Of a DNA stretch of 64,000 nucleotides, positions 7,301 through 51,907 are shown piece after piece (position 1 is the first letter of the stretch; every line of letters begins with the position of its first letter). The stretch lies in assembly GCA_965202585.1 (NCBI GenBank), contig OZ241831.1, positions 60,822,001-60,886,000 of the forward strand. Reading direction: 5' to 3'. Made by a program: the position numbers and the translations under genes. The notes beneath the pieces were generated by a model. It was given only the letters and a program-made list of their open reading frames with translations. It did not search any database and was not told where the DNA came from. Source of the DNA: Thalia democratica. Taxonomy: Eukaryota.

Positions 7301-10300
7301 ACAAGTTTATTTATTTGAAAGCATCGGGGTAAAAGTACGCATTACTTATAGATCAGAAAAAGTAGGGAAATATTTCTCCCTAAAAGATTCAATAAGTAGC
7401 TTGTATCAGAGTTGTCTTGTCTATAAATTTATGTGTCCAGGAGATCTGAACAACCAGTACATTGGTGAGACAGAAAGACAATTTTTCGTCAGAATTAAAG
7501 AACATGTGACCCCAACCAACAGTGCGGTGTTTAAACATATTGAAAATTGTGTATTTTGTACTAATTGTAAAAATATTTATAATTGTTTCAAGGTTATAAA
7601 AACGTGCACTTCGTATAATGAATTATTATCTTCTGAAGCTCTACTCATAAAAAAATTCCAGCCAAATTTGAATAATCAGCTTGGTCCTGATAAAGGATCA
7701 AGAGTAACTATTAATGTGTTTAAATAATCCATTTTGTTTTAATTGTTTATAAAAATCCATTTTTGTTAATTACTTGTCGTTTTAATTAGTTGTGTTTTTT
7801 ACAAATGATATAATTTCACTCAATTTATTTTGTCTTAGTTTAACTAGAGAGTGTTTAGTATTTTGATAAGGGAATATGGACATTCCGAAAGCGCTTAAGT
7901 TTTAATAAAGTTTATAATGAAAAAATTTGTTTGTCTTGTAGTTAAATGGTACTTAATTGCATTAAAAGGTCTAAATATATCTGAAGTTTATTTTAGTTTA
8001 GCAGTTATAGTTACTAAAATCGCAACTACTATTTTTCGATACATTTTTAAATAAAATAAAAGTTACATTTTCTTAAAGAGCTACTTTTAAGTAGAAACAA
8101 AACTGTAAGAAAAAAATGACTTTATTAGTTTACTTTATATATATATATATTACTATACATATTGTTTCAGCTACAAAAATCACTAGAATAATTTTCTAAT
8201 TTATTCATAAATAAGTTTGTTTCAAACAGCAATGTTTGTAGCATTGAAACCCAAAATAAAGAATTAACTTTTCATGTCAAATTTATGTTCTTGTAAAATA
8301 TATATGAAACATTGACAGCAGAGTCCCATGACAATTTTTTAAATAAACTATAACATCATGGAACTATTTGTCTTACCCTACACAAAAAAATCTTTACTAT
8401 AATGTGATTTCCTCAAAGTACTTATATGCAAGTAACATTAAACCTTGAAAATTAATTTAGGTTAATAACCTTAGTTAATCTAAACAAATATCATTGCATA
8501 AAAAAGAACTTTTGCTAAAATGAATACTTCAAATAATAATTGCTTAATTTAGCAATTACATATACAATAATTAAATTATTACAACTAAAAATATAAGCTT
8601 TTATAGGTTCTCACTAAAGTATTCTTCTTTTTTTTACAATTGGTATAAAATTACAACATTAAAACGTAAATAAAATGTAATACTAAAACAATCATCTAAC
8701 ACAACAAAATCATACCTAGTACGTTGTAAGCAGGTTCCTGTTGAGAACACACGAATCTTCTGTTCTTGAAGTGGTTGGTGATGCTGGGTGTTCTACTGTG
8801 TAACTTGCTAATATGAGGAGACTGGTGCCTACTGTGAAGCTTCATGTGAGGACTCACTTGCCTGCTGTGGAGTTTGTTCCTCATCTTCTGCGTTGTGAAG
8901 TTCATCTTCAGTTTTTGAAGTTCCCTGTTCTTCTCACCCACTGATGCCAGTAACTGTATGAATGAAACAGTTAAAAACTCATAAACAAAAACGAAAATAA
9001 ACGGTTTTGGTACTAATGTATAACTAGATAAGAGTAGTTTATAATAAATATTTTTGTGTATTTTTTAAAAAAGGAACACAATATTTTTAATTCTTCCAGT
9101 AACTGTTTAATGGGAATGGTTGTAGATTTTTTTGTAAACAATATATAACAGTAGTTTTCAACCTTAAAAAAATTTTTTGATTTGTGTAAACCAAAAAGGT
9201 TTTAGTTTCCAGACTTTATTTAGTTTATATTCTTTAAAATATTCATATTTGGATATGTTTAAACCAACTAATATTTCATATACAAAGAAGATTTATATGT
9301 ATAAGACAAACATTGTTAAAATTTTAGATTTGTTAACCAATAAATTATTTAACCATTATTTAAAATATAATCATATTTGAAACTTAATTCAAATTAAAAT
9401 AAATATTAACAAATTGATACTTTGAAATTCAATAAATTTAACATAAACATCTAACACATGATTAAGTGATTTCTCATCAAAATATAAGTTTTAATGCCTT
9501 TAAACCTTATCTACTAAAATTGTCATTTTGTTTGATTTTTATAAAACACTAACCTCACTGTGGCTAGTTTTAACAGACTTGAGTTCTTTCGATTGATCAG
9601 TGAGTTTTTGTGACAAAGAAATATTTTCATCCTTCAAGCTTGTAAAAGCGTGAGCGTATTTCTTTTCTATTTGCTCTATTTTTGCCTTGTAACTTTCTAT
9701 GATGTGGTCCTGAAAAAATGTAAATTGTTCAAGACATTTAATTCAAGAGACTTTTTAAATTTATTGAAATTAAATTTAATTTTATGAATATATAATATTT
9801 TGTACCTCTACTGTACAACCTATTATAAAAATTAGTCAACAGTAAAACATTTACAATGGTTATAAAAAATTTGAAATACTAATTAATCTTTATAATATTT
9901 AAAATCACATATATGAGACTAAAATTAGCTAAAACTTCATTTTGTAAATTATTAAAATCTAATAACTAATTTAAAAATTTTTTAACTTTTATAATAATCA
10001 CATAAATAAATAAAAAATTAAATAAAAAAACAAATAAAATATAAGTATTGAAACTGTGTTCATTCATATAAATTTTATACTTATTCAAAATGTAAAAACT
10101 AACATGCTGTATTGAGAATGTAATAAAAACAACAAACCTTATACAGGGAGTCTTGGGTGGTCTGAAATATCCAAAAGTTCATGGCTCTGGTGCAAATGTC
10201 CATGATGACATCTGGTTTGTGGCCAACCAGGGACATGGTCTTGTACCCTTCACTTGGGTTTAGGTTGACCCTGACAAACTCGTATTCCTCCCCCTTCATT

Positions 10301-11304
10301 ACGTGGCCACACACTGGACACTTGTGCTGTTGTACTGTTTGATTGTAAAAAGTATATTTAAATATGTTATATATAAAGTACAAAATTATACACTACAACT
10401 ATGTGCTGTTGCACAGTGAAATTATAAGATTTTGAAATACTTCTATTATAATATATTTCTATTGATGTTATAAGAAATATTTCAAACAATTAAATAAGTA
10501 ATCGAACACGAATAGCCTAGAAAAAGCAACATGTGTGTAGTTTAAAATATTATAATTAGAATAAGATGTAAAAAAAGCAAATTTACAATGAATATAAGCT
10601 TTTTTTTGTATATATAAGGTGTAATAAAGCTTACAAGGCTAGTTTAAAATATATGGAATGGAAATAAAGCCAAATATAAAAATTTTAAATTACTTGGTGA
10701 TGAAATTATACTTCTAAAAACAAAAGACATCAGATTTAGGCAAATATTTGTAGAGCTAAAGAAGAGGCAGGTATATAGCTAGACAAAATTAAGGTACTTC
10801 AAAACAATGTAAAACAACAACGTTTTGCATATCTTTTTTACTGTTATGCTTTAGCTAAACGTACTTTAAACAAATTGTATTTAGATGAAACCAATTCTTA
10901 ATCTAAAATTTAGATTTGAAACACTAAAATTGTTGAAGTAACATTAGATATATTTATTTTAAAAACATTTTGATGGTCAAATAAGTTTATACCCAAATTT
11001 AAAATAGCTCTACTTTTAAATATGTATACATTGGACAGCACAAAGCTATTTTAAAAATATAGCTTTTCTAAAACAAAACCTAAACAAAAAATACTACCAA
11101 ATTAAAAATCATTCAAAAAAAGCGCAATTCAAATCATGCTGCAAAGCACACATGTGTAGTAAGTAGTAGCAATTGTATTTTCTCACCTAAAAACTTGTTG
11201 CCGTGCTCATTGCAGAAAATGTGTGAGCAGCAAGTCACCCAAGCGTGACCGTTTGACAGCGGCTTGCCACACTCTCTCAAATTGCACTTCAGTTCGCAGT
11301 CCAT
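4369..11304 (-). CDS. HEI10: HEI10/CCNB1IP1 meiotic RING E3 ligase, apparently intact (~272 aa predicted)
   Basis: Exons 11304-11187 (MDCELKCNLRECGKPLSNGHAWVTCCSHIFCNEHG), 10334-10138 (CPVC...NPSEGYKTMSLVG.KPDVIMDICTRAMNFWIFQ), 9709-9554 and 8953-8716 (EKNRELQKL), then probable 4624-4541 and 4394-4369. All junctions are GT-AG with matching phases (1,0,0,1,1); total 819 nt. Motifs match CCNB1IP1 (AWVT.CSHIFC..HG, LSPSEEYK.M.L.G, AL.FW.YQ). The last two exons are less certain; an alternative end is TAG at 8696. Confidence 0.88.
5440..5850. repeat. Diverged ~205-bp tandem duplication, left arm only
   Basis: TTGCATTACAACA...CAGATCTTCAGGCACAA...GACAAACAAGCAAAAAGTAATCAAAAGTT...AAGTAAAGTATAC occurs twice in tandem. 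The right arm (~59190-59400) has one copy. Confidence 0.75.
6186..6258 (-). tRNA. tRNA-Arg(TCG)
   Basis: GGCCGTG...CATGGTCG, anticodon arm CTCGA-CT-TCG-AA-TCGAG; lies in predicted HEI10 intron 4. Confidence 0.97.
7310..7975 (+). mobile_element. 5-prime-truncated Penelope-like retroelement (GIY-YIG C-terminus)
   Basis: ORF 7401-7727: LVYKFMCPG...YIGETERQFFVRIKEH...EALLIKKFQPNLNNQ. The tail has GGAAT-atggac-ATTCC-GAAAGCGC. Absent from the mirrored right-arm position (~50900). Boundaries are approximate. Confidence 0.85.
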
Positions 11305-26797: not shown

Positions 26798-26870
26798 GGC
26801 CGCGTGGCCCAATGGATAAGGCGTCCGGCTACGAACCGGAAGATTGTGGGTTCGAGTCCCATCGTGGTCA
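26798..26870 (+). tRNA. tRNA-Arg(ACG)
   Basis: Exact mirror of 19966-20038; TATATA at -31. Confidence 0.95.
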
Positions 26871-28791
26871 TTCTTTTTAATTAGTTAACATTTTACTAAT
26901 AATTAACTATTTCAGTTAAAACGATCGGAATTTGTTGACGGGTGGGCGGAATTTGAAATGAACGGAATAAAAAGACGTCATAAAAGAGAATACTTGGGCA
27001 ATGATGAGCACATTGCAGTTAGTATATGTAAATATAGTTACATAAAATATGTATTTATTAACATATATTTTTTGGTCTTGTTTTATATAAATAACACAAT
27101 TAATGCTTATAACAACGTCATAAGAGATAATACTTGGGCAATGATGAGTATATTGCAGTTAGTTTGCTTGTCAGTATATACATATAGTTTAATCTTTATT
27201 GTTTAACATTTTATTAATATAAACAGAGGAGCGAGTTTTCGAAAGATGGAAAAGCTGTCAAAGAAACTGAAGACTATAGAAGAGTTTAAAGTTATAAAAA
27301 ACCATAACATGCTTATTTTCTAAATACTTTATTGGTTTAATTTTGCAGTATTTACTATTTACTAAATTAAATTTTCATTTTAAATGAAAATTTCGACCTC
27401 TTTCATTTTATCATAAACTGTTTAATCTTAATGTTTAATTGATTCTTTTTTAGAAATCAATCTGTTTTTTTATTGTGTGGTTTTACATTCTTATTTTTAT
27501 CAATAAATATGCATGATTTAATTAATATCTTAAAGTTTACAATCTATAATTTCTTTTTTGTTTATTAGGTTATTATTTTGATTATTACTTTTTATACTTA
27601 ACTTACAATTAAATACAATTACTTTTTATTTTGAAATTAAGCAGCCATATTAAACTCAATTTTTTTACTTGTACAACAATTAGTTTAACAGTTATTAGCT
27701 TTATTCAATTTAGGTAAACTACTGTTTCTTTAAATCTTAGAAAGTTCGTAATAAAGCTAAAACAAAGTCAAAGCTATGAAATAGTTTACAGTTTAAATCA
27801 TAGGCACTTGTTTGTGTTTTAGAATGAAATGGCAAAGTTTGCATTTTAACTAAATGATACTCACTTTGCTTTACTTCAAAATTTTTCTTTCAAAATGAGT
27901 CTACAATTAAACATCAATAGAACAAAATAAATCATAAAAGTTCTAAAGTAATAAAATCACTTTTTAATAATTAAAACACAATTTTGTTGCATTGAAAAGA
28001 ATTTTGAAGCCTGTAAGAATCATGAATAATACAACCTAGTCCAAAATATTATTAAATAACTATAATAAAAAGTATAATTATTGTTTTTAATTAAGTTTCG
28101 TTGTCAAAAACTTAGAAAACTTTGAAAAAACAAATTCATTGAATATCAAATTTATGTGTTTGATAAATTACCACTGTCTAAATTCCTAGATCTGTTTTTA
28201 AAAAAAAGGATAGCTTTCAGTTCTTTAGCTATTAACAATGTATGATTTTTCTTGTTAAACTCTATTTGAAAACATTATTATAAAGTAAGTTATCTACTTC
28301 ATTTTTAAAGCTTATCTAGTAAGTAGTTTTACAACTAGATACTTAAACAATTTGAAACTTAAAATAACTGATTATATCTTTAGTTTTATTTGCATGTAAA
28401 GTTATTCTTATACAGTAGATGTAGATTTGAGAATTTAAATCATATGTTAATTAATAAACTAAATAAAACTTTTGTCTTAATTTTATTAATTTACTAAGTT
28501 TATATTGTTGTAATCTTATATACTTTTAGATTGAATATTTTGGCTTTCATAAGATAAATGTTTTATTAAGTAAATTTTAAAGGCTAGATGGTCTATAACT
28601 TGGTGTACATTTACAAACATGATACTTTACACATCACAAAAGTTTTTTAATTTCCAATTTTCTATATATTTTTTTATGTTTCTTTAATAAAAATACAGAT
28701 CAATAAAAAAATATATAATTAGGTTTAAACGCTTTTAAAAGAAAACTTTGGACTTAAAAGACTTTGGAGTTTAAAGAAAAAACACAAAAAA

Positions 28792-28863
28792 CTGCCCGTC
28801 GGGGAATCGAACCCCGGTCGCCCGCGTGACAGGCGGGAATACTCACCACTATACTAACGAGGA
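28792..28863 (-). tRNA. tRNA-Asp(GTC), acceptor-stem mismatch
   Basis: TCCTCGT...ACGGGCAG (C2-C71 mismatch); 8 nt downstream of tRNA-Ile. Confidence 0.88.
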
Positions 28864-28871
28864 TTAACATG

Positions 28872-28945
28872 TGGCCAGTACGGGGATCGAACCCGCGACA
28901 TTCGCGTTATTAGCACGACGCTCTAACCAACTGAGCTAACCGGCC
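28872..28945 (-). tRNA. tRNA-Ile(AAT)
   Basis: Mirror of 17903-17976 with GAGCGTCG; loop CT-AAT-AA. Confidence 0.94.
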
Positions 28946-29950
28946 ACACGTCTAACGGCTAAACTTATACTATATAAAGTTAATTGCTCCTTTTTAGCGC
29001 TGCTGTTGTCAATAGCACTTCATATTAAATACTTTATTGAAGCTTTGCAAATTATACTTCTATGCACTAAGCAGTTTTGGGTTACAGTTTTAGCGATAAA
29101 AAATTAAATGAATACTTTTTTCCTGTCCTCATTTTATGAACTCACACTTAACAACTTAGATATAATAAATAAAATAATGTACTAGATGTAAATATATGTC
29201 TGTCTTAATATTTCAAACTTTCTATAAAAATCGGTAAGTTATACTTCAAAGTTGGCAATGTTTTGATAATATTAGATTATAGTCCATAAAACTAATAATA
29301 AAGACAAATTTTTTTTTTACAAAAATTACATTTAACAATTTGGTTTACTGGTAGTTTCATAAAACTAATTTTAATTTTAGCTGATAATGCATATGCTTAA
29401 CAGTTTTTATTTGCAAATTGTTGTAACCTTAGTTTGTCGTTTTGAACTATTTAGTTTTGTTTATATTTAAAAAAAACTTATTTAACTAGATTTTAACTTT
29501 TATAATTTTTTTCATTATTTAGAACAATAAAATATTTTTAGTAGTTTAAAACTGTTTAGTACTTTTTGCTAGTTTTAAATCTAGTTTGTTAATTTTTTGT
29601 ATGCCTTATTGTCCGTACTTTTTTTTTATTTTTTAGAATATTAAACATTACTGAAAATCTCTTATAGGGTAATTTATTACTTTAAATTATTTGTATTTAA
29701 TTCATTGAATGTGAGTTGAAAACTTTAATTGTTACACTTAAAACAAAAGTATACAAAAATCTTCGTTGATATTCAAAAGAAGCTTTTAATAACTTACATA
29801 ATTTAAAGTAGTTGTATAAAGCACCTTTAGTTTTCTATTCGAAAACTTTTGTTAAAGTAGATAGTAATATTAAAACTTGATTGGTCAATACAAACCTTAT
29901 TTGACTTTTAAGAACAAAACTTGATAATTAAAATCACTATAAAAAGGGCG

Positions 29951-30023
29951 CATCTCCGCCGGGACTCGAACCCGGAACCTCTGGATTAGAAGTCCAGCGC
30001 GCTATCCATTGCGCTACGGAGAC
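29951..30023 (-). tRNA. tRNA-Arg(TCT)
   Basis: Exact mirror of 16833-16905. Confidence 0.97.
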
Positions 30024-35559: not shown

Positions 35560-38500
35560 ATGGACTGCGAACTGAAGTGCAATTTGAGAGAGTGTGGCAA
35601 GCCGCTGTCAAGCGGTCATGCTTGGGTGACTTGCTGCTCACACATTTTCTGCAATGAGCATGGCAACAAGTTTTTAGGTGAGAAAATAGAATTGCTACTA
35701 CTTACTACACATGTGTGCTTTGCAGCATGAATTAAATTGCGCTTTTTTTGAATGATTTTTAATTTGGTAGTATTTTTTGTTTAGGTTTTGTTTTAGAAAA
35801 GCTATATTTTTGATGGCTTTGTGCTCTCCATTGTATACACATTTTTAAGGTGAACTATTTTAAAGTTGGGTATATTCTTAGTTGATAATCAAACTGTTTT
35901 TAAATTAAATAAATCTAATGTTACTTCAACAATTTTAGTGTTTGGAATCTATATTTTAGATTAAGAATTGGTTTTTCATCTAAATGTTCTGTATAAAGCT
36001 TATTTAAAAAAAGTATTATAACTTTTTGTTGGTGAAAAGCCTACCCTTTAAAAATAAGTATTACATATTGAAAAACTATTTGTTTAATTTTGGCTAAAGC
36101 ATGACAGTAAAAAAGATATGCAAAACACTGTTGTTTTACATTGTTTTGAAGTACCTTAATTTTGTCTAGTTATTTACCTGCATACTTAGCTATACAAATA
36201 TTTGCCTAAATCTGATGTCTTTTGTTTTTAGAAGTATAATCTTATCACCAAGTAATTTAAAATTTTTGTATTTGGCTTTATTTCCACCACCAAATATTTT
36301 AAACTAGCTTTGTAAGTTTTAATATACCTTATATATTAAAAAAAATCTTATATTCATTGTAAGCTTGCTTTTGTTACATCTTATTTTAATCGTAATACTT
36401 TTATACTACACACATGTTGCTTTTTCTAGTGTTCGATTACCTATTTAATTATTGAAACCTACATTTTTATGAAATTTCTCATAACTTAACTGTACAACAG
36501 CACATAGTTGTAGTGTATAGTTTTGTACCACATATATAAAGTATTTAACTATAATTTTTACAATCAAACAGTACAACAGCACAAGTGTCCAGTGTGTGGC
36601 CACATAATGAAGGGGGAGGAATACGAGTTTGTCCGTGTCAACCTCAACCCAAGTGAAGGGTACAAGACCATGTCCTTGGTGGGCCACAAACCAGATGTTA
36701 TCATGGACATTTGTACCAGGGCCATGAACTTTTGGATATTTCAGACCACCCAAGACTCACTGTATAAGGTTTGTTGTTTTAAAAATATATAAATTAATAT
36801 TAATTAATAATTTAATTAAATAAAATTTAATGAAAAATCACTTAATCATGTGTTAAATGTTTATGTTAAATTTTTTGAATTTCAGAGTATCAATTTTATT
36901 AATATTTATTTTAATTTGAATTAAGTTTCAAATATGATTATATTTTAAATAATGATAAAATAATTAATTGGTTAAAAAATCTAAAATATAAACAAAGTTT
37001 GTCTTAAACATATAAATCATCCGTATATATGAAGTATTAATTGTTTTTAACACATCCAACTATAAGTATTAAAGAAAAAATAAACTAAATCAAGTCTCAA
37101 AAAAAATTTTTGGTCTACACAATTCAAAGAATTTTTTTAAGGTTGAAAACTACTGTTATATATTATTTAAAAAAGCTTAATTGACAACAATTCCCACCAA
37201 ACAGTTACTGGCAAAAGGTGAGTGAAAATAAAATTGTTTTCACTTATTTCAATTACACAATAATATTTTTATAATAACTACTTTTATGTATGATATATAC
37301 GTTTCAAAGCCTGTTTATTTTCGTTTTTTGTTTATGATATTTACTGTTTCATTCATGCAGTTACTGGCATCAGTGGGTGAGAAGAACAGGGAACTTCAAA
37401 AGCTGAAGATGAACTTCACAACGCAGAAGATGAGGAACAAACTCCACAGCAGGCAAGTGAGTCCTCACATGAAGCTCCACAGCAGGCAAGTTAGTCCTCA
37501 CATGAAGCTCCACAGCAGGCAAGTTAGTCCACACATGAAGCTCCACAGCAGGCAAGTGAGTCCTCACATGAAACTCCACAGCAGGCAAGTTAGTCCTCAC
37601 ATGAAACTCCACAGTAGGCAAGTGAGTCCTCACATGAAACTTCACAGCAGGCAAGTGAGTCCTCACATGAAACTTCACAGCAGGCAAGTTAGTCCTCACA
37701 TGAAACTCCACAGCAGGCAAGTGAGTCCTCACATGAAACTCCACAGCAGGCAAGTTAGTCCTCACATGAAACTCCACAGCAGGCAAGTTAGTCCGCACAT
37801 GAAACTCCACAGTAGGCAAGTGAGTCCGCACATGAAACTTCACAGTAGGCAAGTGAGTCCTCACATGAAACTCCACAGTAGGCAAGTGAGTCCGCACATG
37901 AAACTCCACAGCAGGCAAGTTAGTCCGCACATGAAACTCCACAGCAGGCAAGTTAGTCCGAACATGAAACTTCACAGCAGGCAAGTTAGTCCGCACATGA
38001 AACTTCACAGCAGGCAAGTTAGTCCGCACATGAAACTTCACAGCAGGCAAGTTAGTCCGAACATGAAACTCCACAGCAGGCAAGTTAGTCCGCACATGAA
38101 ACTTCACAGCAGGCAAGTTAGTCCGCACATGAAACTTCACAGTAGGCAAGTTAGTCCGAACATGAAACTCCACAGCAGGCAAGTTAGTCCGCACATGAAA
38201 CTCCACAGCAGGCAAGTGAGTCCGCACATGAAACTCCACAGCAGGCAAGTGAGTCCGCACATGAAGCTCCACAGTAGGCAAGTTAGTCCGCACATGAAAC
38301 TCCACAGCAGGCAAGTTAGTCCGCACATGAAACTCCACAGCAGGCAAGTTAGTCCGCACATGAAACTCCACAGCAGGCAAGTTAGTCCGCACATGAAACT
38401 CCACAGCAGGCAAGTGAGTCCTCACATGAAACTTCACAGCAGGCAAGTGAGTCCTCACATGAAACTCCACAGCAGGCAAGTTAGTCCGCACATGAAACTC

Positions 38501-40921
38501 CACAGCAGGCAAGTGAGTCCTCACATGAAACTTCACAGCAGGCAAGTTAGTCCGAACATGAAACTTCACAGCAGGCAAGTGAGTCCCCACATGAAACTCC
38601 ACAGTAGGCAAGTTAGTCCGCACATGAAACTCCACAGCAGGCAAGTTAGTCCGAACATGAAACTTCACAGCAGGCAAGTTAGTCCGCACATGAAACTTCA
38701 CAGCAGGCAAGTTAGTCCGCACATGAAACTTCACAGCAGGCAAGTTAGTCCGAACATGAAACTCCACAGCAGGCAACTTAGTCCGCACATGAAACTCCAC
38801 AGCAGGCAAGTGAGTCCGCACATGAAACTTCACAGCAGGCAAGTTAGTCCGCACATGAAACTCCACAGTAGGCAAGTTAGTCCTTACATGAAACTCCACA
38901 GTAGGCAAGTGAGTCCGCACATGAAACTTCACAGCAGGCAAGTGAGTCCGCACATGAAACTCCACAGCAGGCAAGTTAGTCCGCACATGAAACTTCACAG
39001 TAGGCAAGTTAGTCCAAACATGAAACTTCACAGCAGGCAAGTTAGTCCGCACATGAAACTTCACAGCAGGCAAGTGAGTCCGCACATGAAACTCCACAGC
39101 AGGCAAGTTAGTCCGAACATGAAACTTCACAGCAGGCAAGTTAGTCCGCACATGAAACTTCACAGCAGGCAAGTTAGTCCGCACATGAAACTCCACAGCA
39201 GGCAAGTTAGTCCGCACATGAAAATTCACAGCAGGCAAGTGAGTCCGCACATGAAACTCCACAGCAGGCAAGTTAGTCCGCACATGAAACTCCACAGCAG
39301 GCAAGTTAGTCCGCACATGAAGCTCCACAGCAGGCAAGTTAGTCCGCACATGAAACTTCACAGCAGGCAAGTTAGTCCGCACATGAAACTTCACAGCAGG
39401 CAAGTTAGTCCGAACATGAAACTTCACAGCAGGCAAGTTAGTCCGCACATGAAACTTCACAGCAGGCAAGTGAGTCCGCACATGAAACTTCACAGTAGGC
39501 AAGTGAGTCCGCACATGAAACTCCACAGCAGGCAAGTGAGTCCTCACATGAAACTCCACAGCAGGCAAGTTAGCCCGCACATGAAACTTCACAGCAGGCA
39601 AGTTAGTCCGCACATGAAACTTCACAGCAGGCAAGTTAGTCCGCACATGAAACTCCACAGCAGGCAAGTTAGTCCTCACATGAAACTTCACAGCAGGCAA
39701 GTTAGTCCGCACATGAAGCTTCACAGCAGGCAAGTTAGTCCGCACATGAAACTCCACAGCAGGCAAGTTAGTCCACACATGAAACTCCACAGCAGGCAAG
39801 TGAGTCCGCACATGAAACTTCACAGCAGGCAAGTTAGTCCGCACATGAAACTCCACAGCAGGCAAGTGAATCCTCACATGAAGCTCCACAGCAGGCAAGT
39901 TAGTCCCCACATGAAACTTCACAGCAGGCAAGTTAGTCCGCACATGAAACTCCACAGTAGGCAAGTGAGTCCTCACATGAAGCTTCACAGTAGGCAAGTT
40001 AGTCCTTACATGAAACTCCACAGCAGGCAAGTTAGTCCTCACATGAAACTCCACAGTAGGCAAGTGAGTCCGCACATGAAACTTCACAGCAGGCAAGTTA
40101 GTCCGCACATGAAACTTCACAGCAGGCAAGTTAGTCCGCACATGAAACTTCACAACAGGCAAGTTAGTCCGCACATGAAACTTCACAGCAGGCAAGTGAG
40201 TCCCCACATGAAGCTCCACAGCAGGCAAGTTAGTCCGCACATGAAACTCCACAGCAGGCAAGTTAGTCCGAACATGAAACTTCACAGCAGGCAAGTTAGT
40301 CCGCACATGAAACTCCACAGTAGGCAAGTTAGTCCGCACATGAAACTCCACAGCAGGCAAGTTAGTCCGCACATGAAACTCCACAGCAGACAAGTTAGTC
40401 CGCACATGAAACTCCACAGTAGGCAAGTTAGTCCGCACATGAAACTCCACAGCAGGCAACTTAGTCCGCACATGAAACTCCACAGCAGGCAAGTGAGTCC
40501 GCACATGAAACTTCACAGCAGGCAAGTGAGTCCGCACATGAAACTCCACAGCAGGCAAGTTAGTCCGCACATGAAACTTCACAGTAGGCAAGTTAGTCCA
40601 AACATGAAACTTCACAGCAGGCAAGTTAGTCCGCACATGAAACTTCACAGCAGGCAAGTGAGTCCGCACATGAAACTCCACAGCAGGCAAGTTAGTCCGA
40701 ACATGAAACTTCACAGCAGGCAAGTTAGTCCGCACATGAAACTTCACAGCAGGCAAGTTAGTCCGCACATGAAACTCCACAGCAGGCAAGTTAGTCCGCA
40801 CATGAAAATTCACAGCAGGCAAGTTAGTCCGCACATGAAACTCCACAGCAGGCAAGTTAGTCCGCACATGAAACTCCACAGCAGGCAAGTTAGTCCGCAC
40901 ATGAAGCTTCACAGCAGGTAA
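35560..40921 (+). CDS. HEI10: HEI10/CCNB1IP1 paralogue A: intact RING exons, exon 3 deleted in frame, exon 4 with ~105 (MKLHSRQVSPH) repeats before the first stop (~1290 aa predicted)
   Basis: Exons 35560-35677, 36572-36768 and 37361-40921 have intact GT-AG sites and an open frame. Exon 3 (156 nt, phase 0-0) is missing between 36768 and ~36835. First stop is CAA to TAA at 40919. Expression is unknown. Confidence 0.65.
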
Positions 40922-42262
40922 GTGAGTCCGCACATGAAACTCCACAGCAGGCAAGTTAGTCCGCACATGAAACTCCACAGCAGGCAAGTTAGTCCGCACA
41001 TGAAGCTCCACAGCAGGCAAGTTAGTCCGCACATGAAACTTCACAGCAGGCAAGTTAGTCCGCACATGAAACTTCACAGCAGGCAAGTTAGTCCGCACAT
41101 GAAACTTCACAGCAGGCAAGTTAGTCCTCACATGAAACTTCACAGCAGGCAAGTTAGTCCGCACATGAAACTTCACAGCAGGCAAGTTAGTCCGCACATG
41201 AAACTCCACAGCAGGCAAGTTAGTCCGCACATGAAAATTCACAGTAGGCAAGTTAGTCCGTACATGAAACTCCACAACAGGCAAGTTAGTCCGCACATGA
41301 AACTCCACAGCAGGCAAGTGAGTCCCCACATGAAACTCCACAGCAGGCAAGTTAGTCCGCACATGAAACTCCACAGCAGGCAAGTGAGTCCACACATGAA
41401 ACTCCACAGCAGGCAAGTTAGTCCGCACATGAAGCTTCACAGCAGGCAAGTGAGTCCGCACATGAAACTCCACAGCAGGCAAGTTAGTCCGCACATGAAA
41501 CTTCACAGCAGGCAAGTTAGTCCGCACATGAAACTTCACAGCAGGCAAGTTAGTCCGCACATGAAACTTCACAGCAGGCAAGTTAGTCCGCACATAAAAC
41601 TCCACAGCAGGCAAGTGAGTCCCCACATGAAACTCCACAGCAGGCAAGTTAGTCCGCACATGAAACTCCACAGCAGGCAAGTGAGTCCACACATGAAACT
41701 TTACAGCAGGCAAGTTAGTCCGCACATGAAACTTCACAGCAGGCAAGTTAGTCCGCACATGAAACTCCACAGCAGGCAAGTTAGTCCGCACATGAAACTT
41801 CACAGCAGGCAAGTTAGTCCGCACATGAAACTTCACAGCAGGCAAGTGAGTCCGCACATGAAACTTCACAGCAGGCAAGTTAGTCCGCACATGAAACTTC
41901 ACAGCAGGCAAGTTAGTCCGCACATGAAACTCCACAGCAGGCAAGTTAGTCCGCACATGAAACTTCACAGCAGGCAAGTTAGTCCGCACATGAAACTTCA
42001 CAGCAGGCAAGTGAGTCCTCACATGAAACTCCACAGTAGGCAAGTTAGTCCGCACATGAAACTTCACAGCAGGCAAGTTAGTCCGCACATGAAACTCCAC
42101 AGCAGGCAAGTTAGTCCGCACATGAAACTTCACAGCAGGCAAGTAAGTCCGCACATGAAACTTCACAGTAGGCAAGTGAGTCCTCACATGAAACTCCACA
42201 GCAGGCAAGTGAGTCCGCACATGAAACTCCACAGCAGGCAAGTTAGTCCGCACATGAAACTT
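37439..42262 (+). repeat. Coding minisatellite array A, 33-bp unit, ~146 units
   Basis: Unit ATG AAA CTY CAC AGY AGG CAA GTK AGT CCN CAC, derived from the single unit in exon 4 of the left-arm gene (~8843-8875). Confidence 0.98.
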
Positions 42263-43469
42263 TTTATTTTAAATATAATTTTTACAATCAAACAGTACAA
42301 CAGCACAAGTGTCCAGTGTGAGGCTACGTAATGAAGGGGGAGGAATACGAGTTTTTCAGGGTCAACCTCAACCCAAGTGAAGGGTACAAGACCATGTTGT
42401 TGGTGGGCCACAAACCAGATGTTATCATGGACATTTGTACCAGGGCCATGAACTTTTGGATATTCCAGACCACCCAAGACTCCCTGTATAAGGTTTGTTG
42501 TTAAAATTACACTTTCAATACAACATGTTAGTTTTAGTATTTTGAATAAGTATAAAATTTATTTGAATGAACCTAGTTTTAAAACTTGTATTTTATTTGT
42601 TGTTTTATTTAATTTTTTTATTTATTTATGTGATTATTCATAAAATTAAAAAAATTTTAAATGAGTTATTAGTTTCAATAATTTACAAAATGAAGTTTTA
42701 GCTAATTAGTCTCATATATGTGATTTTAAATATTATAAAGATTAATTGGTATTTCATATTTTTTATAACCATTATAAATTTTTTACTGTTGACTAATTTT
42801 TATAATAGGTTATGCTGTAGAGGTACATAATATTATACATTCATAATATTAAATTTAATTTCAATAAATTTAAAAAGTCTCTTGAATTAAATGTCTTGCA
42901 CAATTTACATTTTTTTAGGACCACATCATAGAAAGTTACAAGGAAAAAATAGATCAAATAGAAAAGAAGTACGCTCACGCTTTTACAAGCTTGAAAGATG
43001 AAAATATTTCTTTGTCACAAAAACTCACTGATCAATCGAAAGAACTCAAGTCTGTTAAAACTAGTGATGTACCGGACTCACTATCCGGGTCCGGGTCCGG
43101 CCGGATTCTAATTTGAAAAAAAAGTCTGGATCCGGTTCCGGCTGGATTTTAATTTGAAAAAAAAGTCCGGATCCGGTTCCGGCCGGATTCTAATTTGAAA
43201 AAAAAGTCCGGATCCGGGTCCGGCCGGATCCTAACAGAGATCCGGCCGGACCCGGATCTAGTTAGTAAAAAAGAGCATATTGAAAAGTATTTTTCCAAAA
43301 ACAAACCATGTGTAAATTAATAAGAGTCATTTTCGTCAGCTAAAATGAAACATCTACCGTGATTGGCTCATTTTGTACATGTGACTAATTTACATTTGTT
43401 TACATTTAAACTATGAAATAAACATTTCAGAAATGCAACTCATTACATATGTTGTTAAATTGAAAACTT

Positions 43470-43985
43470 TGGAATAAATACTTGCATTATTTATTGTTTA
43501 AAGTTGAGCTTAAAGAATATTTAGAGTTAATACGGTTGAATTTAAGAGCCGATGAGAATCATATGACAAAATGTTTCAAACTAAATACTGATGCAACAAA
43601 ACATCAGAACATGACAGGCAGTTTATATGTAAGCAGTTAGTTAATTTGGTGTGCAGCTTGAAGCAACAAAATATCTTGAACTTTTTTGTGAATGTTTATT
43701 GTAAGTAGTGTTTTGTTTTAAAAGTGAATATTTCAACTGGTGTTTAATTGTTTAAATATTTAAGCCAGGTTTATAGTTTAATAGTTTATTAAAAATTTAA
43801 CAGTTTCTTGTTTACTAAAAGTTTTATTTAATTTTTAGTTTATTGTTTTAAGTCTTTTGATATAGATTTAAATAGCTTCCAGTTTTTAAAGTGTTACCAA
43901 AGTAATTAATAGTTTTGTATATGCTAGTATTTCTTGTTGTGTTTTATATAAAAGATTCATCACTCAAAACTGTCGTGTCTGATTA
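43470..43985 (+). mobile_element. Diverged partial LTR related to the Gypsy LTRs at 51908 and 57957
   Basis: Collinear with the first ~500 bp of the LTR (ATGAGAATCA, TGTTTCAAACTAA, TTGGTGTGCAGC, AATATTTAAGCCAGGTTTATAGTT, TTTACTAAAAGTTTTATTTAATTTTTAGTTTATTGTTT); roughly 75-80% identity by eye. Confidence 0.85.
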
Positions 43986-44538
43986 TAGAAAGTAATCTCA
44001 GTTAGAATTTAGAATTTGTTAGATATTAATTAAATAAGGTAGGATTTAACTATGATGGGTAGTACTAATAGGTTAAGTGTACCACAATCAGTACACAACT
44101 TTACTACCAAATTGTCAACCCTTGCTAGCTGTTCTACTGATTACAAGATTAAAGTAGTTTTTTCAGTTTTTAATAACCTCATTCTGACTCAGGCTTGTTT
44201 ATATTCACTCTAGCTAGTTTTATTGACTTAAACAGAGGCAACCCTGCTAGTTTGAAAATTTTTGGGAATTTTAGAAATCTTGGACTGCCTCAGGCTAGTT
44301 TAGTTTTTTATAAAAACTCAGGCTAATTTTCTTTTAGATTTTGAATGAGTTTGAGCTGATCCAGTTTTCAATAGTTTGTAGTTTTCTAGTGTATTTTGTT
44401 CAAGAACTTGATTTCAGATTTTTAATTGTAAATAACACCTAAATTTGTAAACCTTGTGGCTAGCTGTTCTAATTATTATTAGATTAAAGTTTTTTTTTTA
44501 GTTTTAAAAATCTCATTCTGACTCAGGCTAGTTTATAC

Positions 44539-44729
44539 TAGTGATGTATTGGACTCACTATCCGGGTCCGGGTCCGGCCGGATATTGCCATTTTGTCTGA
44601 TATCCGGATCTGGCCGGATTTTAATTTGAAAAAAAAGTCCGGATCCGGTTCCGGCCGGATTCTAATTTGAAAAAAAAGTCCGGATCCGGGTCCGGCCGGA
44701 CCCGAAATTGTGGGTCCGGTACATCACTA
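44539..44729. mobile_element. Complete 191-bp MITE forming the right end of the composite element
   Basis: Has its own left TIR TAGTGATGTATTGGAC (2 mismatches), preceded by GTTTATAC, and shares the right TIR. Confidence 0.85.
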
Positions 44730-45435
44730 GTTAAAACTAGCCACAGTGAGGTTAGTGTTTAATAAAAATCAAACAAAATAACAATTTTAGTAGATAATGT
44801 TAAAAGGCATTAAAACTAAAATTATGATGAGAAATCACTTAATCATGTGTTAAATGTTTATGTTAAGTTTTTTGAATTTCAAAGTATCAATTTTATTAAC
44901 ATTTATTTTAATTTGAATTAAGTTTCAAATATGATTATATTTTAAATAATCGTAAAATAATTTATTGGTTAAAAAATCTAAAATATAAACAAAGTTTGTC
45001 TTATACATATAAATCATCCGTATATATGAAGTATTAATTGTTTTTAACACATCCAACTATAAGTATTAAAGAAAAAATAAACTAAATTAAGTCTCAAAAA
45101 AAATTTTTGGTCTACACAATTCAAAGAATTTTTTTAAGGTTGAAAACTACTGTTATATATTATTTAAAAAAGCTTAATTGACAACAATTCCCACCAAACA
45201 GTTACTGACAAAAGGTGAGTGAAAATAAAATTGTTTTCACTTATTTCAATTACACAATAATATTTTTATAATAATTACTTTTATGTATGATACATACGTT
45301 TCATAGCCTGTTTATTTTCGTTTTTTGTATATGATATTTAACTGTTTCGTTCATGCAGTTACTGGCATCAGTGGGTGAGAAGAACAGGGAACTTCAAAAA
45401 CTTAAGATGAACTTCAAAAGCTGAAGATGAGGAAC

Positions 45436-48400
45436 AAACTCCACAGCAGGCAAGTGAGTCCGCACATGAAACTCCACAGCAGGCAAGTTAGTCCGCACAT
45501 GAAACTTCACAGCAGGCAAGTTAGTCCGCACATGAAACTCCACAGCAGGCAAGTTAGTCCGCACATGAAACTCCACAGCAGGCAAGTTAGTCCGCACATG
45601 AAACTCCACAGTAGGCAAGTTAGTCCGCACATGAAACTCCACAGTAGGCAAGTTAGTCCGCACATGAAACTTCACAGCAGGCAAGTGAGTCCGCACATGA
45701 AACTCCACAGCAGGCAAGTGAGTCCGCACATGAAACTCCACAGCAGGCAAGTTAGTCCACACATGAAACTTCACAGCAGGCAAGTTAGTCCGCACATGAA
45801 ACTCCACAGCAGGCAAGTTAGTCCACACATGAAACTTCACAGCAGGCAAGTTAGTCCGCACATGAAACTCCACAGCAGGCAAGTTAGTCCGCACATGAAG
45901 CTCCACAGCAGGCAAGTTAGTCCGCACATGAAACTCCACAGCAGGCAAGTTAGTCCGCACATGAAACTCCACAGCAGGCAAGTTAGTCCGCACATGAAAC
46001 TTCACAGCAGGCAAGTTAGTCCGCACATGAAACTCCACAGCAGGCAAGTTAGTCCGCACATGAAACTTCACAGCAGGCAAGTTAGTCCGCACATTAAACT
46101 TCACAGCAGGCAAGTGAGTCCACACATGAAACTTCACAGCAGGCAAGTTAGTCCGCACATGAAGCTTCACATCAGGCAAGTTAGTCCGCACATGAAACTC
46201 CACAGCAGGCAAGTGAGTCCCCACATGAAACTCCACAGCAGGCAAGTTAGTCCGCACATGAAACTCCACAGCAGGCAAGTTAGTCCGCACATGAAACTTC
46301 ACAGCAGGCAAGTGAGTCCTCACATGAAACTCCACAGCAGGCAAGTTAGTCCGCTCATGAAACTCCACAGTAGGCAAGTTAGTCCGCACATGAAGCTTCA
46401 CAGCAGGCAAGTTAGTACGCACATGAAACTTCACAGCAGGCAAGTGAGTCCGCACATGAAACTCCACAGCAGGCAAGTTAGTCCAAACATGAAACTTCAC
46501 AGCAGGCAAGTGAGCCCTCACATGAAACTCCACAGCAGGCAAGTTAGTCCGCACATGAAACTTCACAGCAGGCAAGTTAGTCCTCACATGAAACTCCACA
46601 GCAGGCAAGTGAGTCCGCACATGAAACTCCACAGCAGGCAAGTGAGTCCACACATGAAACTTCACAGCAGGCAAGTTAGTCCACACATGAAACTCCACAG
46701 CAGGCAAGTTAGTCCACACATGAAACTTCACAGTAGGCAAGTTAGTCCTCACATGAAACTCCACAGCAGGCAAGTTAGTCCGCACATGAAACTCCACAGC
46801 AGGCAAGTGAGTCAGCACATGAAACTCCACAGTAGGCAAGTGAGTCCGCACATGAAACTTCACAGTAGGCAAGTTAGTCCGCACATGAAACTCCACAGCA
46901 GGCAAGTGAGTCCGCACATGAAACTCCACAGCAGGCAAGTGAGTCCGCACATGAAACTCCACAGTAGGCAAGTGAGTCCGCACATGAAACTCCACAGTAG
47001 GCAAGTGAGTCCGCATATGAAACTTCACAGCAGGCAAGTTAGTCCGCACATGAAACTTCACAGTAGGCAAGTTAGTCCTCACATGAAACTTCACAGCAGG
47101 CAAGTTAGTCCTCACATGAAACTCCACAGCAGGCAAGTTAGTCCACACATGAAACTTCACAGCAGGCAAGTTAGTCCTCACATGAAACTCCACAGCAGGC
47201 AAGTTAGTCCGCACATGAAACTCCACAGCAGGCAAGTTAGTCCTCACATGAAACTTCACAGCAGGCAAGTTAGTCCTCACATGAAACTCCACAGCAGGCA
47301 AGTTAGTCCGCACATGAAACTCCACAGCAGGCAAGTGAGTCCGCACATGAAACTTCACAGCAGGCAAGTGAGTCCGCACATGAAACTCCACAGCAGGCAA
47401 GTTAGTCCTCACATGAAACTTCACAGCAGGCAAGTTAGTCCTCACATGAAACTCCACAGCAGGCAAGTTAGTCCACACATGAAACTTCACAGCAGGCAAG
47501 TTAGTCCTCACATGAAACTCCACAGCAGGCAAGTTAGTCCGCACATGAAACTCCACAGCAGGCAAGTTAGTCCTCACATGAAACTCCACAGCAGGCAAGT
47601 TAGTCCGCACATGAAACTCCACAGCAGGCAAGTGAGTCCGCACATGAAACTTCACAGTAGGCAAGTTAGTCCTCACATGAAACTTCACAGCAGGCAAGTT
47701 AGTCCTCACATGAAACTCCACAGCAGGCAAGTTAGTCCACACATGAAACTTCACAGCAGGCAAGTTAGTCCTCACATGAAACTCCACAGCAGGCAAGTTA
47801 GTCCGCACATGAAACTCCACAGCAGGCAAGTTAGTCCTCACATGAAACTTCACAGCAGGCAAGTTAGTCCGCACATGAAACTCCACAGTAGGCAAGTTAG
47901 TCCGCACATGAAACTCCACAGCAGGCAAGTGAGTCCGCACATGAAACTCCACAGCAGGCAAGTTAGTCCACACATGAAACTTCACAGCAGGCAAGTTAGT
48001 CCGCACATGAAACTCCACAGCAGGCAAGTGAGTCCGCACATGAAACTTCACAGCAGGCAAGTTAGTCCGCACATGAAACTTCACAGCAGGCAAGTTAGTC
48101 CGCACATTAAACTTCACAGCAGGCAAGTTAGTCCGCACATGAAACTCCACAGCAGGCAAGTTAGTCCCCACATGAAACTTCACAGCAGGCAAGTTAGTCC
48201 GCACATGAAACTTCACAGCAGGCAAGTTAGTCCGCACATTAAACTTCACAGCAGGCAAGTTAGTCCGCACATGAAACTCCACAGCAGGCAAGTTAGTCCC
48301 CACATGAAACTTCACAGCAGGCAAGTTAGTCCACACATGAAACTTCACAGCAGGCAAGTGAGTCCTCACATGAAACTCCACAGCAGGCAAGTTAGTCCTC

Positions 48401-50103
48401 ACATGAAACTTCACAGCAGGCAAGTTAGTCCGCACATGAAACTCCACAGTAGGCAAGTTAGTCCGCACATGAAACTCCACAGCAGGCAAGTTAGTCTTCA
48501 CATGAAACTTCACAGTAGGCAAGTTAGTCCGCACATGAAACTTCACAGTAGGCAAGTTAGTCCGCACATGAAACTTCACAGCAGGCAAGTTAGTCCGCAC
48601 ATGAAACTTCACAGTAGGCAAGTTAGTCCGCACATGAAACTTCACAGTAGGCAAGTTAGTCCGCACATGAAACTTCACAGCAGGCAAGTTAGTCCGCACA
48701 TGAAACTTCACAGTAGGCAAGTTAGTCCGCACATGAAACTTCACAGCAGGCAAGTGAGTCCTCACATGAAACTTCACAGCAGGCAAGTGAGTCCGCACAT
48801 GAAACTCCACAGCAGGCAAGTTAGTCCGCACATGAAACTTCACAGTAGGCAAGTGAGTCAGCACATGAAACTCCACAGTAGGCAAGTTAGTCCGCACATG
48901 AAACTCCACAGCAGGCAAGTTAGTCCGCACATGAAACTTCACAGCAGGCAAGTTAGTCCTCACATGAAACTCCACAGTAGGCAAGTTAGTCCACATATGA
49001 AACTCCACAGTAGGCAAGTGAGTCCACACATGAAACTTCACAGCAGGCAAGTTAGTCCACACATGAAACTTCACAGCAGGCAAGTTAGTCTTCACATGAA
49101 ACTTCACAGCAGGCAAGTTAGTCCGCACATGAAACTCCACAGCAGGCAAGTTAGTCCGCACATGAAACTCCACAGCAGGCAAGTTAGTCCACACATGAAA
49201 CTTCACAGCAGGCAAGTGAGTCCGCACATGAAACTCCACAGCAGGCAAGTTAGTCCGCTTATGAAACTCCACAGCAGGCAAGTTAGTCCGCACATGAAAC
49301 TTCACAGCAGGCAAGTGAGTCCGCACATGAAACTCCACAGCAGGTAAGTTAGTCCGCACATGAAACTTCACAGTAGGCAAGTTAGTCCTCACATGAAACT
49401 CCACAGTAGGCAAGTTAGTCCCCACATGAAGCTTCACATCAGGCAAGTTAGTCCGCACATGAAACTCCACAGTAGGCAAGTTAGTCCGCACATGAAGCTT
49501 CACAGCAGGTAAGTTAGTCCGCACATGAAACTTCACAGTAGGCAAGTTAGTCCTCACATGAAACTCCACAGTAGGCAAGTTAGTCCCCACATGAAGCTTC
49601 ACATCAGGCAAGTTAGTCCGCACATGAAACTCCACAGTAGGCAAGTTAGTCCGCACATGAAGCTTCACATCAGGCAAGTTAGTCCGCACATGAAACTCCA
49701 CAGCAGGCAAGTGAGTCCCCACATGAAACTCCACAGCAGGCAAGTTAGTTCGCACATGAAACTCCACAGCAGGCAAGTTAGTCCGCACATGAAACTTCAC
49801 AGCAGGCAAGTGAGTCCGCACATGAAACTCCACAGCATGCAAGTGAGTCCGCACATGAAACTTCACAGCAGGCAAGTTAGTCCGCACATGAAACTCCACA
49901 GCAGGCAAGTGAGTCCGCACATGAAACTTCACAGCAGGCAAGTTAGTCCGCACATGAAACTTCACAGCAGGCAAGTTAGTCCGCACATGAAACTCCACAG
50001 TAGGCAAGTTAGTCCCCACATGAAACTCCACATCAGGCAAGTTAGTCCGCACATGAAACTCCACAGCAGGCAAGTTAGTCCGCACATGAAACTCCACAGT
50101 AGG
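45436..50103 (+). repeat. Coding minisatellite array B, 33-bp unit, ~141 units
   Basis: Same unit as array A. Stops at 49345 and 49510 (CAA to TAA). Ends by rejoining the ancestral exon-4 tail (PPHISKLHSRTPSITNHFKNRRF). Confidence 0.98.
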
Positions 50104-51907
50104 CGCCAGCCTCCTCATATTAGCAAGTTGCACAGTAGAACACCTAGCATCACCAACCACTTCAAGAACAGAAGATTCGTGTGTTCTCAACAGGAACCTG
50201 CTTACAACGTACTAGGTATGATTTTGTTGTGTTTAGAAATATAAGTTTAATTAAGTTGTCAAGAATATTAAATAGTTTTATTAAAACTTATAAATGTTTT
50301 TTGTTACCGAATGTAATAATTAAATTGTTGTTCTATCCGTAAGTTAGTAAATTAAACAATCGAAAACTGAAAGTTTCATTTAACAGAAGACTTTTAATGA
50401 ATTACATTTGTGTTAGTTATTAATAAAATTTTTCAAGTACTTGGTTTTATGTTCTTTACATATAAGTATTTTGAAGAAAATACTTTACCGTTGAGTTTAT
50501 TTTGGTGCAGCATAAGATACTAGTTCATTAAAATTGTTCTGTGCTGTTATAAATTTATTTCAAAATTTTGTTATTGGACTCATGTTATTGTCAACATTAC
50601 AAACATATAATTCGACACTATAAGTTTATTCTATGTTTTGTGTTTCATGCTACTAAAATAGTTGTTTGAAACAAACTTATTTATAAGTAAATTAGAAATT
50701 TATTTTGTGATCTTTGTAGCTTGAAACACTGTATATAGTAATATATATGTATATATAACAAACTAATAATGTCAATTTTGTTTTTACAGTTGTGTTTTTA
50801 CTAAAGTGTGGCTCTTTAAGAAATAGTAACTCTTCTTTTATTTAAAGATATATAAAAATATAATAGTTGCAATTTAAGTAACTATAGCTGCTAAGTTCAG
50901 ATAAACTTGTCTGTTTCATTTTAAAAATAGTTTCTGGCTGTTTTGGTAAGAATTTTTCGTTTAAGTATATTTAAATAACCTCAGAATAGTTATAGTATAC
51001 TTAAATTCTTCTAGTTATTTAATTTTTATGCTTGTATGTTGAAATTATTATTTTTATTAATTGCTATAAATGTTTTTGCTTACAACATAGTAGATTATTT
51101 CTTTTATATTGAAGTTTGATTGCCAAGACATTAATTTTAATAAGTGAAAATACATATTACTAAAAAAGCTATGTTTGACTTTATTTGAAAAGATTGAAAT
51201 CGAACAATGATCCTTATACATAATTTTATTGTTGAACATATCTGATCATATCCATAGCATGTATAATTTTTCAACTTTTTGATATATGTTAAGTTTATTA
51301 TTGATGTTAACTTTTATCAATTTTGAATTGTAAAATAAGCTATAAAAAAATAAATATAAAATAAGTTTCAAAAGTTTTATGTAAAGTTAAAGCTTTTTAA
51401 CATATGAAGCTCTAATTAATTTTACAATAGAAGCAAATCTGAATTAGAAAATTGTATAAAGAAGTATAATAAATATTTTAAAAAATAAAAATTATTCTAC
51501 TAACTTATACTTTTTAAACATTAAAAAAAAAATTGCTTTTTACAAAGTTTATAATATCAGCTAATAAGTTTAATTTAAGTTAAACAGAATTAAAAAAAAA
51601 GTAAGTTAATTAAAGACTGTATAGTAAAATTAAAGCTGTTAGTTTTATATTTGATAATAAGATTTCCAAAAAAAAAAAGTTCTATCAGAAGAGTATATTG
51701 AAAACATCAAGTTCGAAAAGTAACTTAAAGGTTATTTTTGTAGTAACAACTTTCAAAAATTAATTAATTGGTTATATTTTAAACACAATAATGCCTTAAA
51801 TGACATTTAAATTAAAAACATTTAAGAAAGTATTTTATTTCTGCAACCACATAGAGAAACAGCAAACTTAGCATTGCTAGCAAGCTGTTTTAATAAGAGA
51901 GAAATTG

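Follow-up and report, generated by a model that had tools for sequence, protein, structure and literature searches.

In the 64,000-nucleotide window of the Thalia democratica genome studied here (contig OZ241831.1, positions 60,822,001 to 60,886,000), one of two genes for the meiotic RING E3 ligase HEI10 (CCNB1IP1) carries an 11-residue tail motif multiplied into an array of 146 in-register units, followed by a second, damaged copy of the exon-and-array segment. Our preferred reading, to which we give about an even chance, is that the tail motif of an old, functional HEI10 paralogue became a translated minisatellite and that, since an internal duplication, the gene has entered the early stages of decay. 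A young paralogue that is breaking down is the most likely description of the locus, more so than a tuned new regulator. The right-arm gene of the palindrome described below was complete (exons 1-4) and under selection during most of the period since the arms diverged. A short native run of KLHSR motifs in its exon 4 grew into an in-frame 33-nt minisatellite, presumably by unequal exchange or replication slippage, and the repeat would have been translated within the disordered C-terminal tail for at least part of that growth. A recent tandem duplication next copied the segment from exon 2 to the array. The downstream copy (copy B) later decayed: exon 2' acquired a nonsense mutation, exon 3' a transposon and the lead-in to the array a frameshift, and two stops arose within the array. 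The upstream copy (copy A) lost exon 3 and acquired one array stop, and both arrays went on shuffling. The only product open today would consist of the RING, a coil of reduced length and 105 repeats, and would not extend to the conserved tail.

The window forms a palindrome of about 60 kb with one HEI10 gene per arm. The left arm (about 977-21893) and the right arm (24943-61357) are separated by a 3-kb spacer, and their identity drops from 99-100% beside the spacer to about 81-87% at the outer ends. The left-arm gene is canonical (Table 1) and has the long coiled coil typical of HEI10. Its exon 4 is translated as ...QKMRN KLHSRQVSPHM KLHSRHQSPHI SKLHSRTPSITNHFKNRRFVCSQQEPAYNVL, and so holds one exact unit (KLHSRQVSPHM) and two degenerate ones (KLHSRHQSPHI and SKLHSRTPSITNH), as an earlier note made from the DNA letters had described. 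A fifth exon of this gene was sought by tblastn with homologues, in guanine-cytosine (GC) islands and by arm-to-arm conservation, and none was found; the GC-rich islands of the arms, taken as candidate exons, were ruled out as transfer RNA (tRNA) genes or a Penelope fragment.

The assignment of the right-arm gene to HEI10/CCNB1IP1, already proposed in the earlier note, was confirmed by phmmer. Exon 2 gave 344 matches with E values down to 5e-17, of which the best named was the Ciona intestinalis CCNB1IP1-like protein (XP_002128741, E 2e-16), and it aligns end to end with residues 42-105 of that protein at 56% identity. To judge from these best hits, the source is probably a tunicate. The N-terminal RING of copy A is of the HEI10 type, as it combines the CPVCG motif of exon 2 with a match of exon 1 to Pfam zf-RING_5 (E 8e-6, which lies below the gathering score for a query that is half a domain). 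To judge from the alignment, the linker helix and the head-to-head bundle region that follow the RING appear to be kept in exon 2 of copy A. Compared with the left arm, exon 1 shows three differences, one of them non-synonymous (N/S), and exon 2 shows ten, nine synonymous and one V>I; the right-arm alleles of exon 2 include ATA at codon 11 and CGT at codon 21.

Copy A joins this N-terminal part to the exon 4A lead-in and the repeat. Exon 3, which encodes 52 amino acids of coiled coil, is absent from copy A and was located only at 9709-9554 on the minus strand and from 42919 onward. The junction 36768/37361 passes from phase 0 to phase 0, so that exon 2 is in frame with exon 4A; the claim that intact RING exons are fused in frame to the repeat thus held. 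Tandem Repeats Finder delimited array A at 37439-42261 (period 33, 146.2 copies, 94% matches, 0% indels), and cutting it in register yielded 146 units of constant length, each with 0-5 mismatches. The consensus unit KLHSRQVSPHM contains K, R, two H, no D or E, one S-P and one R-x-x-S, which is the composition first read from it. The HEI10 frame is open over 1186 codons from the acceptor at 37361 to a TAA at 40919 in unit 106, in agreement with the early estimate of ~146 units and ~105 in frame. Without this stop the frame would run to the TAA at 42329-42331, which lies in exon 2' but not in its coding frame. The open frame of array A thus closes at 40919, or at the latest at 42331, short of the conserved end of exon 4. 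The minus strand is likewise open across both arrays and, because a stop-free 33-nt unit is open by construction, the open frame alone is no evidence of coding. The extent first proposed for the locus, 35560-42262, was right for array A but covers only part of what is present, given the loss of exon 3 and the second array at 45436-50104.

An additional feature of the intron about 150 nt upstream of exon 4 is a 13-nt copy of the exon 4 start (TTACTGGCAAAAG), at 37205-37217 and 45202-45214. In both right-arm copies it has a good acceptor (CAG/) on one side and a strong donor (/GTGAGT) on the other, and a pattern search of the left arm gave no match. It may be a decoy or a poison micro-exon.

That the segment from exon 2 to the array was duplicated in tandem follows from the end of array A, which breaks off mid-unit at 42261 and is succeeded by the end of intron 1 and a second exon 2. 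The two copies differ markedly in their lesions. Copy B has a nonsense mutation, a transposon within an exon, a frameshift and two array stops, whereas copy A shows only the in-frame loss of exon 3 and one stop within the repeat. The nucleotide changes specific to exon 2' of copy B comprise one synonymous and five non-synonymous ones. The conserved end of exon 4, which differs from the left copy at six positions (four synonymous, two non-synonymous), lies beyond array B. The element inserted in exon 3' contains 41-nt subterminal tandem repeats, rich in CCGG (43084-43234 and 44602-44700), and about 535 bp in its interior are 82% identical to the long terminal repeat (LTR) of the neighbouring retrotransposon.

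Table 1. Features of the two HEI10 genes of the window; slashes mark splice sites.
Feature	Position	Strand	Remarks
Right-arm exon 1	35560..35677	+	ATG, first half of RING; 39 amino acids; donor TAG/GTGAGA
Right-arm exon 2	36572..36768	+	Second RING half (CPVCG), linker helix, start of coiled coil
Intron without exon 3	36769..37360	+	Lacks about 645 bp that the left arm (9481-10126) and copy B retain (self-BLAST)
Exon 4A lead-in, LLASVGEKNRELQKLKMNFTTQKMRN	37361..37438	+	End of coiled coil; 1 synonymous difference from left copy
Array A	37439..42261	+	146 units of 33 nt, KLHSRQVSPHM, no indels
Sole in-frame stop of array A	40919..40921	+	CAA>TAA in unit 106; 105 full units before it
A/B junction	42262..42295	+	Array A cut at unit position 5, joined to last ~34 nt of intron 1
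Exon 2' (copy B)	42296..42492	+	TGT>TGA at a RING cysteine (42319-42321); also H>Y, V>F, S>L
Exon 3' (copy B)	42919..44749	+	Split near its 3' end by element of ~1.67 kb
Element in exon 3'	about 43065-44729		Terminal inverted repeat CTAGTGATGTACCGG; duplicated flank TTAAAA
Exon 4B lead-in	45359..45435	+	77 nt instead of 78; -1 frameshift, stop after 21 codons
Array B	45436..50104	+	141 units; stops at 49345 and 49510
Conserved exon 4 tail, KLHSRRQPPHISKLHSRTPSITNHFKNRRFVCSQQEPAYNVL	50089..50215	+	In frame with array B only
Left-arm canonical HEI10	8716..11304	-	Four exons; three motif copies only, in exon 4
Left-arm exon 1	11304-11187	-	
Left-arm exon 2	10334-10138	-	
Left-arm exon 3	9709-9554	-	52 amino acids of coiled coil
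Left-arm exon 4	8953-8716	-	

Long tandem arrays within a palindrome are hard to assemble, and the array lengths or the tandem A/B arrangement might in principle stem from mis-assembly or from two haplotypes stitched together. We regard such an artefact as very improbable. The window is without any N, and the A/B junction is a clean breakpoint from a truncated unit to intron 1. Moreover, the copies are told apart by discrete lesions, namely a deletion, a transposon, a frameshift and a nonsense mutation, and the arrays contain 69 distinct unit sequences in non-periodic order. Sequencing runs were searched by the share of sampled words they contain, with an array-region query (37340-38600) and a flank query. 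Two runs of one sample (X1 and X2), which may be the assembly's own sample, contained 0.43-0.45 of the array words, a rate that matches the 0.46-0.47 obtained for the unique flank; a third run, under another organism label, contained 0.31 and 0.42 of the sampled words. Since about 80% of the flank query is intron, these three runs probably hold DNA.

The relative ages of the copies were estimated from a three-way alignment of the intron before exon 4 (left arm, A and B; 522 columns). Lineage-specific changes number 79 in the left arm (15%), 7 in A and 9 in B, from which it follows that the arms are old and that the A/B duplication is recent, only about one tenth as old as they are; A and B are about 3% divergent, compared with 15% between the arms. 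Over the same long interval the exons changed little at the protein level. Of about 665 nt of exon, 24 differ between left and right, with 18 synonymous changes among them (binomial p 4e-7 against 25%). By the Nei-Gojobori method, non-synonymous (dN) and synonymous (dS) divergence between the left copy and A is 0.0095 and 0.161 over exons 1, 2 and the exon 4 lead-in, and between the left copy and B it is 0.0185 and 0.126 over exon 3 and the tail. This low dN and the synonymous excess, set against 15% intron divergence, indicate that the right-arm gene, including exon 3 and the tail, was functional for most of its history, and that strong purifying selection acted on the paralogue after its split from the left copy.

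The units of the arrays carry a coding signature of their own. All five highly variable unit positions (3, 6, 12, 21 and 27) are third codon positions in the HEI10 frame, and at position 27, the fourfold degenerate site of the proline codon, all four bases are seen. Among alleles present in at least 10 units, seven are synonymous and one is non-synonymous, where 17% would be expected to be synonymous (p 3e-5); with a transition-weighted expectation of 30%, the p value is 1e-3. No other reading frame has a synonymous excess, the best being one minus-strand frame at 4:4. The ratio of non-synonymous to synonymous diversity (piN/piS) of the arrays is 0.037, and their 287 units, whose length is a multiple of three, contain no indel and three stops, one in A and two in B. 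Because the common unit variants are almost all synonymous and the register was never lost, we infer that the repeat was translated during at least part of its growth; on these patterns, it was probably once a coding sequence. The rare alleles behave differently. Four are synonymous and 16 non-synonymous, which is the neutral ratio, and they are as common in A as in the dead copy B. On the whole, the repeat shows the imprint of selection on what it encodes, an imprint older than the A/B duplication, and nothing points to selection on the arrays since.

The arrays have also been rearranged extensively. A and B share their variable sites, with similar allele frequencies, but in a comparison of unit order no shared run of at least four identical units was found, and the best local unit alignment scored below the shuffled mean. 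Shared alleles without shared order imply that the arrays turn over much faster than point mutation changes them. Local block duplications are present inside each array, for example nine units repeated 48 units apart in A. At the start of array A (37439-37770), nine of the first ten units keep the ancestral proline codon CCT and the tenth has CCA, whereas array B (45436-45770) is of the derived CCG type from the outset; A thus seems to have kept an old array edge at its 5' end, and the edge of B looks homogenised.

Several observations weigh against the preferred reading, either against decay of copy A or against translation of the repeat. With respect to decay, exons 1 and 2 of the right-arm copy are intact, and exons 1, 2 and 4A all have canonical splice sites. 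The loss of exon 3 is in frame, and a stop inside a repeat tail merely shortens the protein. The coding changes specific to A since the duplication are four synonymous and one conservative V>I (binomial p 0.016 against 25%). Small as these counts are, the 4:1 ratio looks constrained beside the neutral 1:5 of exon 2' in B (Fisher one-sided p 0.067), and the comparison hints that copy A is still constrained. With respect to translation, the bases by which native units 1 and 2 differ recur exactly as the frequent variants at positions 3, 6 and 12, and these variants may have been inherited at seeding and not filtered within the array. When those positions are set aside, the signal is reduced to four synonymous among five frequent new alleles (p 0.004-0.03; Mann-Whitney p 0.06).

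The latter points could be taken further, to the view that the array was never translated. The right-arm copy would have died first, a non-coding minisatellite would then have arisen from two adjacent native motifs, and the synonymous look of the variants would reflect the inherited differences between native copies together with chance. Any stop-free unit with a length that is a multiple of three gives long open frames, and unequal exchange preserves unit length in minisatellites. We nevertheless hold this view to be improbable. GTT at position 21 and CCG, CCA and CCC at position 27, the alleles that originated inside the array, are all synonymous, and they are the four of the five just mentioned. 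Exons 1-4 and the tail beyond the array remained under purifying selection until about the time of the A/B duplication, when the variant pool was already present in both copies. Furthermore, there are no indels in 9.5 kb of array, whereas the neighbouring intron has about 10 gap runs for every 96 substitutions.

The points on decay bear instead on the possibility that copy A is a live, neofunctionalised gene, with exons 1, 2, 4A and array A expressed in the germline as a 152-kDa RING protein. Co-assembly of this protein with canonical HEI10 could alter foci or chromatin binding, and array length could serve as a fast-evolving tuning knob. We consider this a serious alternative, though clearly less probable than decay. 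In its favour are the intact frame with its canonical splice sites and phase-0 junction, the contrast of substitutions between A and B, and the coding signature and lack of indels of the array. The biology of HEI10 is also compatible with it. In both human and Arabidopsis, HEI10 assembles into tetramers, fibres and foci by means of its RING, a head-to-head four-helix bundle, a long coiled coil and motifs in the disordered tail, and deletion of the tail abolishes the foci (PMC13174674). HEI10 is able to phase-separate (PMC10756261), its dosage sets crossover number, and it stands at the centre of current coarsening models of crossover patterning (PMC9556546, PMC10036115). The protein is thus dosage-sensitive, and its tail drives the assembly of foci (PMC13174674, PMC10756261, PMC9556546). 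In the human protein, residues of about 70-96 form the tetramer interface and a parallel coiled coil of ~100 residues forms the rod (PMC13174674); exon 2 appears to cover the region homologous to the former.

The predicted product itself is unusual. Conceptual translation of copy A gives 1291 amino acids (152 kDa, isoelectric point 12.0), with a repeat tail of 1160 amino acids that has no acidic residue, 212 K and R, 197 H, 104 S-P sites and 104 R-x-x-S sites; the tail is thus extremely basic and rich in S-P, which bears out the basic Ser-Pro tail of the earlier note. AlphaFold2, run on a single sequence of the lead-in and 15 units, returned no confident fold (predicted local distance difference test score 57.7) and an untrustworthy strand pattern, with a helix of low confidence at residues 3-23 of the exon 4 lead-in. 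If made, the product could plausibly join HEI10 tetramers and bind nucleic acid strongly. Of the broader interpretation offered at first, the HEI10 paralogue, the in-frame fusion and the basic S-P tail stand. However, the coil is mostly lost, the conserved tail is unreachable, the downstream half is decaying and recent array mutations are neutral. The fusion might act as a crossover modifier or dominant negative, but a recently disabled gene is at least as likely.

Several of these features speak against a live copy A. The 52 amino acids of coiled coil are gone, and with the 26-amino-acid lead-in alone remaining, the copy falls short of the ~100-residue rod. The C-terminal tail of the open product is replaced by the repeat; the conserved end of exon 4, which was selected until recently, is out of reach of its frame and can be read in frame from the broken copy B only. 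The rare variants of the arrays show a neutral pattern, to the same degree in A and in the dead copy B. Each unit also presents donor-like sites (CAA/GTKAGT and CAG/GCAAGT), the use of which with AG sites in the array would break the frame. As to transcripts, a marine metatranscriptome run (X4) contains 7% of the words of 37340-38600, which might be counted in favour of expression, but about this share would come from native exon 4 of the left arm, and the run was not listed for exons 1-2. It does not separate array transcripts from others and settles nothing. The strongest form of the idea, in which a live germline copy A with ~105 basic, phosphorylatable units co-assembles with HEI10 and its unstable array length causes heritable variation in crossover number, seems to us unlikely.

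The stops in the arrays allow a variant of these readings. All three in-frame stops (40919, 49345 and 49510) result from an identical C>T change, at unit position 16, which turns CAG/GCAAGT into CAG/GTAAGT, a consensus 5' splice site; in array A this site lies at 40917/40918. A donor at the stop leaves two bases of an Arg codon, and the frame would be restored exactly by splicing to an AG/G acceptor at the corresponding place in a later unit, although such acceptors lack pyrimidine tracts. The first stop need not define the product, then, and the stops might instead act as donors through which the array is spliced in frame to units further downstream or to the conserved tail. Two of the three stops, one per array, lie on a rare AAG-CTT unit background, which suggests a common origin or exchange between the arrays.

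Searches for relatives of the repeat were negative in each collection used. The protein collection gave no match to the 1211-amino-acid open reading frame of the array, to the lead-in with eight units or to exon 2, and the metagenome contigs gave none to the lead-in or to a degenerate two-unit pattern. The ESM Atlas returned scores near 0.72, a low recognition, and no relatives of the repeat, and Pfam gave only spurious low-complexity matches to it. Three proteins with long multi-stretch matches (P0009, P0066 and P0115) were rejected as candidates for a long-tailed HEI10, since by appearance two look like bacterial repetitive proteins and one like a fusion. Within the collections searched, no protein with such a tail was found; the earlier note knew of no described HEI10 with one. 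In a distant relative among ENA contigs (L001, 10031-13667; L002, 9466-13102), HEI10 is Ciona-like, and its RING end, coil and coil end are encoded by separate exons. The distance of this relative precludes its use in polarising the changes, and its HEI10 locus has no sign of a KLHSR repeat. Genes for Mariner-type transposases lie near this locus.

The remainder of the window contains other repeated elements. ARAGORN predicted 19 tRNA genes between 2867 and 63630, mostly as mirror pairs across the arms (for example, 16833-20039 and 26797-30023). The mirror-paired genes are Arg-TCT, Ile-AAT, Asp-GTC, Arg-ACG, Arg-TCG, Pro-TGG and Lys-CTT, and the spacer has Gly, Lys and Ser genes. An LTR retrotransposon occupies 51900-58730 in the right arm only; its direct repeats of 783 bp (51900-52681 and 57948-58730) are 98.6% identical, and its open frames contain aspartyl protease, reverse transcriptase/RNase H and integrase domains. 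A short open stretch at about 7400-7550 (plus strand), on the downstream side of the left-arm HEI10, contains a GIY-YIG-like motif (YIGETERQFFVRIKEH) that resembles the endonuclease of Penelope-like elements.

Two HEI10 paralogues have long been retained in this lineage, and they form a natural pair: one copy multiplied the tail motif more than 100-fold, and for most of that time selection continued to act on its exons. The searched collections gave no HEI10 relative with a repeat tail of this kind. The locus would be a ready-made experiment on tail valency and charge in HEI10 assembly. If the copy is dead, it is a record of a coding minisatellite in a palindromic duplicate growing, duplicating and decaying.

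Like canonical HEI10/CCNB1IP1 of Ciona and human, the right-arm gene has an N-terminal RING over exons 1-2 and a conserved post-RING region, and it shares the succession of a coiled coil and a low-complexity tail rich in Ser, Pro and basic residues, with the repeat placed exactly at the start of this tail (architecture after PMC13174674). Unlike canonical HEI10, relatives of which measure about 180-420 amino acids and among which none was found with a repeat tail, copy A ends in 1160 amino acids of one 11-residue unit and has lost the 52 amino acids of coil and the conserved end of the tail. The SPKK-type motifs of sperm histones and the heptad tail of RNA polymerase II are likewise built of many short tandem units with S-P, multivalent and phosphorylatable. 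The tail of copy A would be like these in its one S-P per unit, and its strong positive charge would favour nucleic-acid binding. The resemblance involves no sequence relationship, as the unit reads S-P-H-M-K, not S-P-K-K, and 0 of 104 sites fit [ST]-P-x-[KR]. A parallel in mode of change is offered by internal tandem repeats through which young paralogues in segmental duplications are remodelled (PMC2812944), and by coding minisatellites in general, in which, as here, a duplicated gene carries a short in-frame unit with a length that is a multiple of three, expands in unit register and shows rapid turnover of unit order with local block duplications. The present case differs from those repeats in scale, with 146 and 141 units and a basic tail that exceeds the remainder of the protein several times in length, and in its host, a meiotic E3 ligase, in which the array was later duplicated together with an exon.

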